Shown: positions 39,717-45,700 of the stretch, in pieces | Layout of the letters: every line of letters begins with the position of its first letter | How positions within the stretch are numbered: position 1 is the first letter of the stretch | Assembly: GCF_001447785.1 (NCBI RefSeq) | Contig: NW_015165871.1 | Location: 1 to 59,958, forward strand | Direction of reading: 5' to 3' | Length of the DNA: 59,958 nt | DNA from: Gekko japonicus | Lineage: Eukaryota | Position numbers and translations under genes: made by a program | Notes under the pieces: model-generated | The model's input: the letters and a program-made list of their open reading frames with translations, nothing else | What the model was told of the DNA's origin: nothing | The model's database searches: none

Positions 39717-42700
39717 CTGCAGGGAGGGAGGGAGGGTGAACTGGATATCTGTGTTTCTGGGAACAGTTTGCCTTGAGTTATATCAGTGGAGAGAGCCAGA
39801 TACAGATGTGACAGGAGAAGGAAGGGCTTCATATGAAGATTAATGTCAATAAGGTTAAGATGGCTTTTTTGTTATCTTGTTCCCTTTGATTAGGATACAT
39901 CCATTTGGACTCCCCCCCCACACCTCCCCTGGCCATGCAGAGGGTTGGGGAGTGGAAAGGGGCTGCTCAGCTAGGCGAGCTGCCCCTCTGATCCATCTGA
40001 CGGCTCTCAGCGACAGAGCCCCCTCTCCTCTCCTCTCCTCTGCAAACTCAGAGCCCAGCCCCTGCCGCCTCGAGGCTGATCCTGCTGCTGGGGATGGGGA
40101 AAGATCAGCCCTCCGCCAGCCAGGGCCTGTCTCCCGGGGGTGGGGTGGGGAGGGGGGGGCTGTTGCTCTGCTCTGGCTGACCTGCAGAATGTAGTTCCCG
40201 GGCCGGACGTCTGTGATGTCAATCCACTGGCAGTCGATGTCGTGCCGGTAGAGGTCCCAGCAGCCCACGGTGATGCCCTGCTCCCCGAAGTTGGCGCACT
40301 CGTAGCGCTTGCCCACGTCTGCCGGAGGAGGGGGTGGGCGTCAGGGATGGCCTCTGGCTGCCTCCCCCTCTGCTCCTGCCCTGGGAAGGAGACTGGGGCA
40401 CAGGCAGGTGGCACTGTGGCCTCACCGCCCATGAGAGGGGCCCACACGCCCCCTCCTCCCTGACACCCGCCTGGTCTGCAAGGGGCTGAGAAAGACCGCG
40501 AGGCCCTCCGCACGCGCAGCCCCTGCCCAGCAAGCCCCGTGGGCCTCCCGAGAGCATCGCCCACCTTCCTGGCATTCCGTGTCTTCCAGGCAGAAGCTGG
40601 CCTTGTGTCCCTCTGCCACCTTGGTGCCATTGGGGGTGAGGAGGTCGTAGTGGGTGAAAATGTCCATGCTGTGGTAGTGCCTGGGGGGGTGAGACGTGGC
40701 GGGGAGGAGGGACTCTGTGGCTGGCCCTCCTCCTCCGCCCTCCGGTGCTGGGGTGGCCTCCCGCCCTCCCCGTGCCTCCTCCAGCCTCTGGGGCGCCCAG
40801 GGGAGAGAGACCCACCCGCTGGCTTCCGCTGCTCCTTACCCGTGGCATTCGTGCCACACCCAAGAGTGGCGGCCAGCTTTGGGGCGGAAGTCTGCCCGGC
40901 CGTTGTTGTGGATCTGGGAAGAGAAACGCAGGAGGCGCCGGTGCCCATAGGGCCAGTTTGCATTACGGGCACTGCTCGACAAGCAGTTCTCCTCTGCAGC
41001 ACAGTAGAGCATGTGCAGAGGGCGGTCCTCGATGTACGCCGTCTCTTGCACCAACGGGGCGTGGAGCAGCAGGTCTGAGGCAGCTGCAGGAAGGGAAAGG
41101 AGGAAGGGACAGTTGGGGACGTGGGAGAGGACAGGAGGCCCCCACGCGGAGGGGCTTCGGACCCCCGGGGGAGGGGGAGATGGAGGGGGGCACCCAGAAG
41201 CCCAGCTATGCCCCCATTAAACCCCAAAGAGAGACAGAGAACACCCAAAGACGGGAGGGGAATCCAGGACACGCACGCACGCATGCACCCCGTTGGCCCT
41301 CCCCCCCCCACAAGGCTCACTCTCGGAGCAGATGACCCCAGCCGCAAAGCGAGCGCTCGTCTTCTGACAGTTGACGGTGTTGTGGTGTTGGCAGTGGCTC
41401 AGTGTCATCTCGTGCCCGGCGCACTTCACGCCACTCAGCACCATCTCCGTCACGTTGCTGGCATCCCAGTACCACGTTTCCTTGGAGAGACGCCACACAC
41501 GGCCTGAGCGGGGAAGGAGGGAGTCCCCCACGCCTCTCCCCCCCTCCCCCGCCAGCCGTGTTTTGGCACCAGCCAGCAAGCACCCACTTCCCCTGCTGCC
41601 AGATGCTGACTTGGCACAGCTCCCGCACCAAGGCCATGCATGCTCCATGCTCTGCCCCCCCATCCCACCCCATCATCCTCTAATGAGACCCCACACACAC
41701 AGGCACAGGCCCGCCCCGGCCGTCCACCTACCGTCACGGCATGCATGGCGTAGCCCAGGCCGAGCTGGCGACAGGCCACCATGGCTTCTGTGGTGCTCCA
41801 GCCCGTGCTGCAAACCGTGCCCCACCTGCCGGCCTGCTTCACCTCCACGCGGCCCTCAAACACCGTGCGGCCGCCAACTATCCGGATCTGTGGAGAAGCC
41901 CTGCAGGGAATGAGCGTGCCACAGGCCCCCCAGCCAGCCAGCCAGCCAGGTGAGGGAGCAGGGCGGACGTGTCCCTCCTCGGGCACCAGGGGGAGAAGCC
42001 CTCAGCTGCTCCGCGGGTGGTTGCAAGCGGCCCAGGGAGCAGGAGGAGGAGGGTAGCCCCCCCCACAGCAGCAGCCCCAGCAGCCAAGCGCCAGGAGCAG
42101 CAGCAGCAGCAGCAGCAGCCATCCACGGCCCGGCGGGCAAGCGCAAGGACCTACTTGCAAGCCTTGGCTGGCAAAGCCCAGGCCCAGCTGGCGGCACACC
42201 ACCATGGCCTCCGGGGTCCCCCAGCCCTGCCCACAAACCAAGCCCCACCGCGGGGGGGTGCTGTTGCTCCCAGCCCCCAGGGCCACCTCGACCCGCCCCT
42301 CAAAGCGGCTGCGGCCCCCGCTCAGGCGGACCTGNNNNNNNNNNNNNNNNNNNNNNNNNNNNNNNNNNNNNNNNNNNNNNNNNNNNNNNNNNNNNNNNNN
42401 NNNNNNNNNNNNNNNNNNNNNNNNNNNNNNNNNNNNNNNNNNNNNNNNNNNNNNNNNNNNNNNNNNNNNNNNNNNNNNNNNNNNNNNNNNNNNNNNNNNN
42501 NNNNNNNNNNNNNNNNNNNNNNNNNNNNNNNNNNNNNNNNNNNNNNNNNNNNNNNNNNNNNNNNNNNNNNNNNNNNNNNNNNNNNNNNNNNNNNNNNNNN
42601 NNNNNNNNNNNNNNNTATACCCAGCTCTTCACTACCTGAAGGTATCTTGGGGCGGCTTTCAATCGCCTTCCCTTCCTCTCCCCACACCAGACAGACACCC

Positions 42701-45700
42701 TGTGAGGTTAGGTGGGGCTGAGAGAGCTCTGGGAGAGCTGTGACTGGCCCAAGGCCACCCAGCTGGCTGGAGGAGGAGGAGGAGGGGCGGGGAATCCAGC
42801 CCGGTTCTCCCGGATTAGAGTCCGCTGCTCTTAACCCCCCACACTACACCACACCACGGCTGGCTCTCATAGGGGCGGCATACGGGGGGCAATACTGGGG
42901 GCAGATCCCTCCCCCGGGGGGGGGTATTTCAAGCACCTCCCTGGGCTTGGACCCTCTCCATTCCTCGGACCACCGGTCAACTCAGGGGCAGGAAGGGCTT
43001 GTGGGGCAGGCCAGCAAAAGAGCTGAGACCATAGGGGGTGGGCGGGCCTTAGCCGAGTTTCACATTGGGATGGAGAGGATTGGGCCCCTCCCATGCAAAA
43101 CAGGTGCCCTGGACAGTAATTTGGGGAAGGGTCAGGCAGGTACGGAAGCTCTCCGAAGGGCTCTGCCCACCACCTCCCCATAGCCACAGAACCCCCTGGC
43201 CTGCGCCACTGGGCCCGGCAAAGGCCTTCCGCCGCCCTTGGCACCAGCTGTGTTGGGGGGGGCCCTGAAACAAAAAGCCTCCCACCCCCCCTGCCATTGT
43301 NNNNNNNNNNNNNNNNNNNNNNNNNNNNNNNNNNNNNNNNNNNNNNNNNNNNNNNNNNNNNNNNNNNNNNNNNNNNNNNNNNNNNNNNNNNNNNNNNNNN
43401 NNNNNNNNNNNNNNNNNNNNNNNNNNNNNNNNNNNNNNNNNNNNNNNNNNNNNNNNNNNNNNNNNNNNNNNNNNNNNNNNNNNNNNNNNNNNNNNNNNNN
43501 NNNNNNNNNNNNNNNNNNCCCCGGCCGGCGGCGGGGCCCCCCCCCCCGCTGGGGGGGGGGGCCCCCCCCCCCCCGTCAGCAACTTAACATTGCAGTACTA
43601 TGTTGATCTGCAAACCCGGCTCTCAGAATTCCCAGTTTTCCTTTTTCCCCCAAAACGCAAGTCTCCAGTCCTCTGTGTGGCAGGGGTGTGCCTTCCCGTT
43701 TACGTCTCCACAACCGAAGAGGCTGGCTAGAGAGGGTGTGCTGTTTTAAAGGAAAACTGGGAATGCAGAGGTCCTGATACACAGACAGCCCTAGCTGTGG
43801 CGCTAGCGTGCTCCTCGGCCGCTGATTTAAAGAGAAACCCTGGAAAGGCCCCAGAGGGACGTGGGGGAGCCACAGTTGGGGGTCTGGAGCAGGGAAACCC
43901 ACCACGCGGAAGCCCCCTTCCCCAGTGCCCCAGAGCAGCAGCCTGAGCAGGGGCGGCAGAGCCACACAAGCCGGCCCTAACTCCCGTTCCTCCACAGGGC
44001 CAGGCGCTTGGGTCTCGGGGGGAGGGGCAGTTCTGTGGGACGTGTGGGTCCAGGCCAGACCCCCTGGGAGCCAACTCCTTCCACAGGCGAAGGCACACCT
44101 GACCCAGGCCAGGACTTGGCCCACTCTGTCTTCTCCCCCCGCCCACGTGCTTTCACCCTTGCTTGGAGGGTGGGAGGAAGCGGGGGGGGGCTCCACCCGA
44201 GACCCACAAGCAGCAGCAGCAGCAGCAGGAGACTCAGCTGGGCCTTCTTGCTGCCTCTCCTGCCCTCAGGCAGCCCCCCACCTCTTCTTCCCCGCACAGG
44301 GGGCAGGGGGAGCTCTTGGGGAAGGGTGATGGTGGCAGTGACAGGTCTGTGGGGGGCTTCTTTGCGGTGGGAGGGCTCCCTCCCTCATCACCAAGCAGGA
44401 GCCACCCCCGGCCCAGTGGGGAGCAACAGAGCAGGAGCGGCCGCCCGGGTGCTGGGCCCACCGGAGGGGGGGGGAGACAGCCCCCCCTGGGCTGAGAGGG
44501 CTGCAGCAGGCCAGAGAGCAGGAAAGGGGGTGGGGGTGGGGGGAGGCAGGGCCCCCTGCCCGGGGTTGTGGGCGGCCCGGCTAACCGTGGTCTCGTAGCC
44601 CATGTAGGGGACGTTGCAGCGGACGCCGGCATCCTCGGAGTGTTTGCAGCCCTCCTCGGTGATGTTCTTGTGTGGGCAGCCCCACAGCGACTTCTCGGAG
44701 CCCGCGCACTGCACCTCGTTCATGTGGATGGGGCCCATGCCTGCCACAGAGAGGGGAAGGAGGGCAGAGCGTCCCGAGAAGCCCCACACCTGCACGGCTG
44801 CCAAGCCACGGGGCTTGTTTTGCCCTGGCTGGAGGGCTCTAGCACGCCCAGTCGCTCCCGGTCCAGTGGGGGTTCTCTCTCTCACACACACACACACAGT
44901 CTCACACACACACACACACACACACAGAGCGGCCTTCTTCTCCTGAGCCAGACCTCCCCCCCCCCTTCCAGGTCAGTCTTCACTTCTCAGACTGGCCGTG
45001 GCCCTCCCGGGGCTCAGGCAGAGAAAGGCCTTTCCCGTCCGCGGAACGGACCCGGGGCCTTCTGCTGGACGCGATGCAGATGCTCTTTCCCCTGTGCCCC
45101 CAGGGCCCCTCCCCTCGAGTGAGGGCAAAGCAGCTGCCCGGCTTGCCATTGGTGGGTGGGTTGGAGCTGACCCGACGACTCCTTCAGACGGAGTCTGAAA
45201 ACTGACAGGAGGGAGGGGGGGTAGGGGTTTCCAACTCCCACCTTGGCCCAGAGTAGTGGCATGTGCCAGCCAGACTCACCTTGGCCCATGCGTGCCCCCG
45301 TCAGGGCCTCCTTGGCACTGCCAAAGCCCAGCTCCCGGCAAACCACGCTGGCCGACATCAGGTTCCAGCGGTCGTCGCAGACGGTGCCCCACTCGTTGTT
45401 CTTGAGCACCTCCACCCGCCCTTCGCCGGCCCTGGCCCCGCCCTTCAGCCGGATGCGCTTCTGTGGGGGACACCAGGAGGCTCAGAGCGGGCCGGGGGGA
45501 CGAAGGGAGGCTGCAGCGGGGGGGGGGCATCCTGGGGCCACGGGCATAGTCCAAGGCTCCCTCTGAGCTGTGGAGTCTTGCGAGCAAAAATCCTACTGTG
45601 TGAGCTGCCGGCATTAAAGTGGTGAGCCAGCCACTTGGCTCCTGCATAAATCAGTTTGCTCTGGAGCCCTCCTTCCCGAGCCAAGACAGGAATGTGTGAG

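Follow-up and report, generated by a model that had tools for sequence, protein, structure and literature searches.

The sequence studied here is a 59,958-nt stretch of Gekko japonicus contig NW_015165871.1 (59% G+C, with 13 N stretches), and the whole of it is referred to as the window. Exons of LOXL3 are directly readable on its minus strand, where SRCR halves are recognised by Pfam and lysyl oxidase catalytic exons are visible. The gene was identified by a catalytic exon 3' of exon 9 that is identical to leopard gecko LOXL3 over ~80 residues, and by an exon tree in which both versions of exon 8 described below join LOXL3 and stand apart from LOXL2; the exon trees also place the sequence among lizards, with exon 8a falling with the geckos. 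Exon 7 (44586–44740, minus strand) encodes the C-terminal half of SRCR3 according to Pfam and ends in phase 0 (..Y-E-T-T) at the donor gttagc, and its junction string is identical to that in LOXL3 proteins of other species. It is followed by intron 7 (42332–44585), whose readable part holds no additional SRCR-like open frame outside two N stretches (42335–42615 and 43301–43518). These stretches are gaps or masks, and a further exon copy could lie within them.

Two homologous exons, each encoding an N-terminal half of SRCR4, lie next to each other between exons 7 and 9, with no coding exon in between. Exon 8a (42155–42331, minus strand) has 177 nt and encodes 59 aa with a long, LOXL2-like hairpin loop carrying an N-S-T sequon. 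Exon 8b (41732–41887, minus strand) has 156 nt and encodes 52 aa; its short hairpin has the length usual for SRCR domains, and the sequon is missing. The two are separated by an intron of 267 nt (41888–42154), and a second intron of 251 nt (41481–41731) leads to exon 9 (41321–41480), which opens in phase 0 with E-T-W-Y-W-D and closes in phase 1. All of these features are on the minus strand, and exon 9 is the sole C-terminal half of SRCR4, as an earlier note on this DNA had claimed. The positions and translations of 8a and 8b given there were reproduced exactly, and the homology, the 0-0 phase and the two SRCR cysteines that it described were all found in both exons, the cysteines lying in W-G-x-x-C and C-R-Q-L-G contexts. 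Both exons match the first half of the Pfam SRCR domain (PF00530, positions 1–47), 8a with 45 bits and 8b with 55 bits, and both lengths are multiples of three. The CAG/GTAGGT splice sites claimed for both were seen in part: both donors are gtaggt and 8b has a good acceptor (ttctccacag), but only the last three intron bases (cag) of the 8a acceptor are visible, as the N stretch at 42335–42615 abuts them and hides the pyrimidine tract. The intron between 8a and 8b is pyrimidine-rich on the minus strand, with 71% G+C, and contains a (CTG)n/(CAG)n microsatellite (42092–42121); this run could bind CUG-binding splicing factors.

To judge from their sequences, the two exons parted long ago. They share 53% of their amino acids with one 7-residue gap (BLASTP E=1e-20), at the DNA level identity over the 3' 101 nt is 74%, aligned codons are 67% identical, and the divergence between them within the window amounts to dS ~0.8 and dN ~0.35. 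A tree was built from 78 exon peptides, 34 of them 8b, over 57 alignment columns, too few to settle the deeper forks. In it, 8b forms a single clade that holds all 34 sequences (support 96/91), with sharks basal and an internal order that roughly follows the species tree, and LOXL3 8a and 8b are jointly separate from LOXL2 (100/99). Among 13 taxa with both forms, mean cross-species identity was 77.9% for 8b and 67.1% for 8a, and 8b had the higher value in 72 of the 78 pairs. Shark and lizard 8b are still 73–75% identical, which excludes neutral sequence for 8b, and since both copies are conserved (mean identities of 78% and 67%) neither is a relic. The earlier note had let its reading depend on neither exon evolving neutrally and, by these peptide-level comparisons across species, neither does. 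Together, the occurrence of both types from sharks to birds, the single 8b clade and the cross-species identities argue that the duplication is older than the split between cartilaginous and bony vertebrates and that both copies have been held under constraint, which bears out the ancient origin proposed for the pair. We also considered a derivation of 8b from the SRCR3 exon. 8b and the SRCR3 half share 50% identity, but 8b has its helix motif, exon end and phase in common with 8a, and the tree joins it to LOXL3 8a; on these grounds this origin was rejected.

To follow the pair in other species the exons were queried singly, and full-length comparisons used database proteins. When representative proteins were searched with 8b, the best 150 matches were filled by proteins with multiple SRCR repeats. 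Many assemblies contain genomic reading frames in which a search centred on 8b found copies 73–85% identical to it, and in bird-like contigs (P0151–P0153 and P0239) a single open frame contains one exon of each type, 8a and 8b, ~46 codons apart. Two more searches from database proteins (a frog fragment and gecko isoform X5) gave 163 further clusters. For each cluster we read the string from the end of exon 7 to the start of exon 9. A LOXL3-type exon 9 was present in 139 clusters, which comprised 86 with an 8a-9 junction, 38 with 8b-9, 12 with both exons, 2 unspliced genomic frames and 1 with neither; because the search ranked its matches by likeness to 8b, these counts are not frequencies. Annotated 8a forms come from a ray, coelacanth, teleosts, the frog Ascaphus, the salamander Pleurodeles, tuatara, lizards, snakes, turtles, crocodilians and birds, and annotated 8b forms from sharks (Stegostoma and Pristiophorus), many teleosts, a newt, many frogs, lizards, alligator and many birds. 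All mammals retrieved, echidna and opossum included, have the 8a form, so the claim that exon 8 of human LOXL3 resembles 8a agrees with the type that mammals use. The companion claim, that fish loxl3b resembles 8b, was too simple: both loxl3b and loxl3a of teleosts carry both exons, and in the eel X1 contains 8a and X2 contains 8b.

The retrieved sequences also point to losses. In three rodent-like genomic frames (P0194, P0199 and P0203) the end of an 8a-type exon is followed, 44–45 codons later, by exon 9 read out of frame, which gives an intron between exons 8 and 9 of ~133–136 nt without 8b. Such an intron is too small to hold a 156-nt exon, which suggests that 8b was lost in placental mammals. 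Most frogs, on the other side, are represented by 8b forms alone among the sequences retrieved, and the 8a exons of Ascaphus (P0317, X2) and Pleurodeles (P0359, X4) have long branches in the tree (0.65 and 0.62). The pattern suggests that amphibian 8a is under relaxed constraint or has been lost, which would be the converse of the loss of 8b in mammals. No 8b form was found among the snake or turtle LOXL3 sequences retrieved. In one snake model, Crotalus tigris X1 (P0312), the 8a loop is 5 residues shorter than in other snake models (P0323 and P0335); the model may be in error, or a second splice site within 8a may be used.

Annotated isoforms of other species show how the two exons are combined, with the proviso that RefSeq models are automatic predictions. 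In the leopard gecko, Eublepharis macularius, X1 and X3 (XP_054845760 and XP_054845763) contain 8a only, X2 and X4 (XP_054845762 and XP_054845764) contain 8b only, and X6 contains both. The American alligator, Alligator mississippiensis, has 8a only in X1 and X2 and 8b only in X3 (XP_059577180), and the eel Anguilla rostrata has 8a only in X1, 8b only in X2 and both in X6. For these three species the single-exon isoforms are otherwise the same apart from 8a or 8b. The isoform switch postulated earlier is matched by same-species isoforms that differ by this exon alone, as annotated in the models of other species, and these pairs are the strongest part of the comparative evidence. Haliaeetus albicilla has 8b only in X5 and both exons in X3, and further models with 8a and 8b together in frame are Buteo X1 and Phaenicophaeus X7. 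Elephant shark has one sequence with an 8a-9 junction (XP_007882850) and one with 8b-9 (V9KX48_CALMI), the latter of which we take to be cDNA-derived from the series of records to which it belongs. Among intron-free Logan contigs, 7-8b-9 was found in P0291 (748 aa/2810 nt, lizard-like) and P0308 (747 aa/2706 nt, frog-like), and 7-8a-9 in P0412 and P0414 (eel); none of the few contigs of this kind contained 8a and 8b together. Another Logan sequence, P0272 (424 aa), joins exon 7 straight to exon 9 and so skips exon 8 in frame; it looks primate or human and, like P0197, was set aside from the comparisons for that reason. The remaining leopard gecko isoform, X5 (XP_054845765, P0240), has a different start, ~130 codons upstream of 8b in sequence that is intronic elsewhere, and continues through 8b-9 until its end. 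An internal promoter may lie behind this model and yield a short product with SRCR4 and the catalytic domain, which would recall human LOXL3-sv1.

Strict mutual exclusion, put forward as probable for the pair, agrees with the single-exon isoforms of gecko, alligator and eel and with the single-exon intron-free contigs; against it stand the 12 clusters, and several RefSeq models, that contain both exons in frame. Because two-exon models recur in several lineages, exclusion may be leaky. We looked in the window for a mechanism that could enforce it (a short intron, a frame shift, incompatible splice sites or RNA pairing), and none was visible. Steric exclusion is unlikely on sequence grounds, given the 267-nt intron and a branch-point-like CTCAT that lies 23 nt before the 8b acceptor and 244 nt from the 8a donor. 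Both donors begin with GT, and since both exons are multiples of three, decay of frame-shifted transcripts cannot enforce exclusion either. The best inverted repeat is a 12-nt perfect complement between the 5' end of 8a (42316–42327) and 41502–41513, a stretch ~25–35 nt before the exon 9 acceptor that holds a branch-point-like CTCAG. As a pairing-based signal for exclusion it was rejected, as 10% of dinucleotide shuffles contain a repeat of equal length.

The explanation that we favour, and consider likely, is that 8a and 8b are ancient tandem-duplicated exons for the N-terminal half of SRCR4 in LOXL3 that are normally spliced one at a time to give two forms of the enzyme. The main competitor treats them as independent cassette exons, such that 8a-only, 8b-only, both and neither are all made and only their ratios are regulated. 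Models with both exons recur in lizards, birds and teleosts, the transcript-derived P0272 has neither, all four outcomes are in frame, and splicing of 8a to 8b is permitted by the 267-nt intron, in which a branch-point-like site lies 23 nt before 8b. The disulfide pattern of group A SRCR domains, however, pairs cysteines of the N-terminal half with cysteines of the C-terminal half (PMC5899467), so that two N-halves with a single C-half would leave two cysteines unpaired; with two such spare cysteines the two-exon protein is probably not a working form. In addition, single-exon forms outnumber two-exon forms by 124 to 12 clusters, none of the few intron-free Logan contigs has both exons, and the two-exon models may be artefacts of automatic prediction. 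On balance we give the cassette explanation a modest chance of being correct.

It is considerably less probable that one copy is a silent relic in this species while being used elsewhere. Loss in single lineages does occur, as the rodent-like introns without 8b indicate, and the frogs, which mostly show 8b forms alone, and the long-branched 8a of Ascaphus and Pleurodeles hint at it too; the acceptor of 8a in the window is, moreover, hidden by Ns. Yet neither exon is damaged: donors are good, no conserved residue is missing, and lizard exons that are used in RefSeq isoforms resemble them closely: 8a is 86% identical to that of leopard gecko LOXL3 X1, and 8b is 90–94% identical to the 8b of other lizards. 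We give almost no credence to the idea that the assembly duplicated this stretch, or that a recent local event produced the second copy. The tandem arrangement, and nothing else, speaks for it, and it is contradicted both by the divergence within the window (67% identity in aligned codons and dS ~0.8) and by the fact that each copy is far nearer to its shark or teleost counterpart than to its neighbour. The earlier note had dismissed such a duplicate for being too diverged, and its judgement stands.

The structural consequences of the choice can be gauged from human LOXL2. 8a aligns over its full length with SRCR4 of the LOXL2 structure (PDB 5ZE3), including the longer hairpin, which exceeds that of 8b by 5–7 residues and is also found in LOXL4. 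The sequon in the 8a loop aligns to LOXL2 Asn455 (numbered such that chain position 118 of 5ZE3 is residue 435). This asparagine is glycosylated in LOXL2, and its glycan is reported to be important for secretion in insect cells but dispensable in HEK293 cells (PMC5899467). The 7-aa loop with an N-S-T sequon attributed to 8a is indeed present here, but it is not universal: the loop sequon is found in this genome, in sharks and a ray, most teleosts, the salamander Pleurodeles, tuatara and geckos, and is absent from birds, crocodilians, turtles, snakes, Anolis and mammals. Given this patchy distribution the glycan cannot be the whole story. The hairpin of 8b is short, basic and of ordinary SRCR length; it aligns without gaps with SRCR domains of CD163 and, within 5ZE3, best with SRCR3. 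In three columns (after W-G, one after the helix, and the last) the 8a and 8b groups have no residue in common. Predicted structures were poor, with a mean pLDDT of 38 for the alligator 8b isoform and of 54 for a two-exon model from tuatara, in which the catalytic domain is unfolded; in the latter the 8b half scored ~77–82 and the 8a half ~63–74, which in so poor a model is a hint only. The earlier note had placed the switch in the SRCR next to the catalytic domain. That holds for the sequence, but in the LOXL2 crystal structure SRCR4 touches SRCR3 only and not the catalytic domain (PMC5899467). Since there is no such contact, an influence of the exon choice on surface or binding properties appears likelier than a direct one on catalysis.

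The favoured explanation, in which an ancient duplicated pair is spliced one exon at a time, can be put as follows for lepidosaur LOXL3. Long ago, the exon that encodes the N-terminal SRCR4 half would have been duplicated in tandem, giving 8a and 8b at the same intron position and in the same phase, and in this genome exon 7 would normally be spliced to one of the two and that one to exon 9. The exons, their homology and their conservation can be read directly, and one-at-a-time use is seen in annotated isoforms and a few transcript-derived proteins of other species. The products would be two full-length enzymes that differ in ~55 residues of SRCR4 only, covering strands 1–3, the hairpin loop and the single helix. 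8a would represent the form common to LOXL2, LOXL4 and mammalian LOXL3, with its longer hairpin and, in some lineages, a sequon; 8b would supply the short basic hairpin typical of an ordinary SRCR domain, with no sequon and with residues after the helix that differ consistently from those of 8a. Apparently 8b was lost later, in placental mammals. The isoforms may differ in function through the surface of SRCR4, its glycan or its binding properties. A wider interpretation is that 8a and 8b constitute a regulated, functional switch of ~450 million years, between a glycosylated long and a short basic hairpin, that affects how LOXL3 is secreted or processed or how it binds matrix and ligands, with opposite specialisation of lineages (placental mammals keeping 8a only and most frogs using or keeping 8b only). 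We regard this as a tentative proposal that is possible but rather doubtful.

If it is true, zebrafish, Xenopus and chick express a form of LOXL3 that mammals lack. Craniofacial, spinal and eye development depend on LOXL3, which is linked to cleft palate, a Stickler-like syndrome and myopia (PMC6678131), and much of the developmental work on it uses zebrafish and other non-mammals. Should non-mammals make two versions of SRCR4, of which mammals lack one, knock-downs, antibodies, constructs and inferences of orthology should name the isoform concerned. For the study of splicing evolution, the pair offers a clean and ancient case of homologous exons with no obvious exclusion mechanism and with signs of reciprocal loss in frogs.

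The pair had been thought undescribed, and this proved half correct: it is contained in RefSeq and Ensembl-derived models of many species, a close gecko among them, but we found no paper linking LOXL3 to mutually exclusive or homologous exons. LOXL3 is likewise absent from the main text of the papers on homologous exons that we found and from two supplement files of PMC9741552, a human catalogue. As far as we have seen, then, 8a and 8b are annotated by pipelines yet apparently undescribed in the literature. The absence of LOXL3 from such catalogues fits the apparent lack of 8b in placental mammals; because the mammalian lineage has seemingly lost one copy, the pair would be invisible to catalogues centred on human.

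Among known systems, the nearest relative in structure is SRCR4 of human LOXL2 (5ZE3), which 8a resembles in its longer hairpin and in the sequon at Asn455, while 8b lacks both; no short-loop alternative for LOXL2 or LOXL4 was found among the matches of our protein searches. For LOXL3 itself, a 2019 review lists only the splice variants sv1 and sv2 and does not mention 8a/8b (PMC6678131). In those variants another promoter or exon skipping removes whole SRCR domains (SRCR1-3, or SRCR2) (PMC6678131). The 8a/8b choice is similar in that the SRCR part is altered and the catalytic domain kept, but differs in that half of SRCR4 is swapped and the four-domain architecture retained. The best comparison is with the tandem-duplicated, mutually exclusive exons of vertebrates, such as exons 5a/5b of sodium channels (PMC4465641, PMC5740500, PMC9741552). 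LOXL3 departs from these in having no evident mechanism of exclusion and in the existence of two-exon models. In other respects the resemblance is close: the homologous exons are adjacent, of similar length and equal phase, their origin is ancient, both copies are strongly conserved, and the swap takes place inside a single folded domain.
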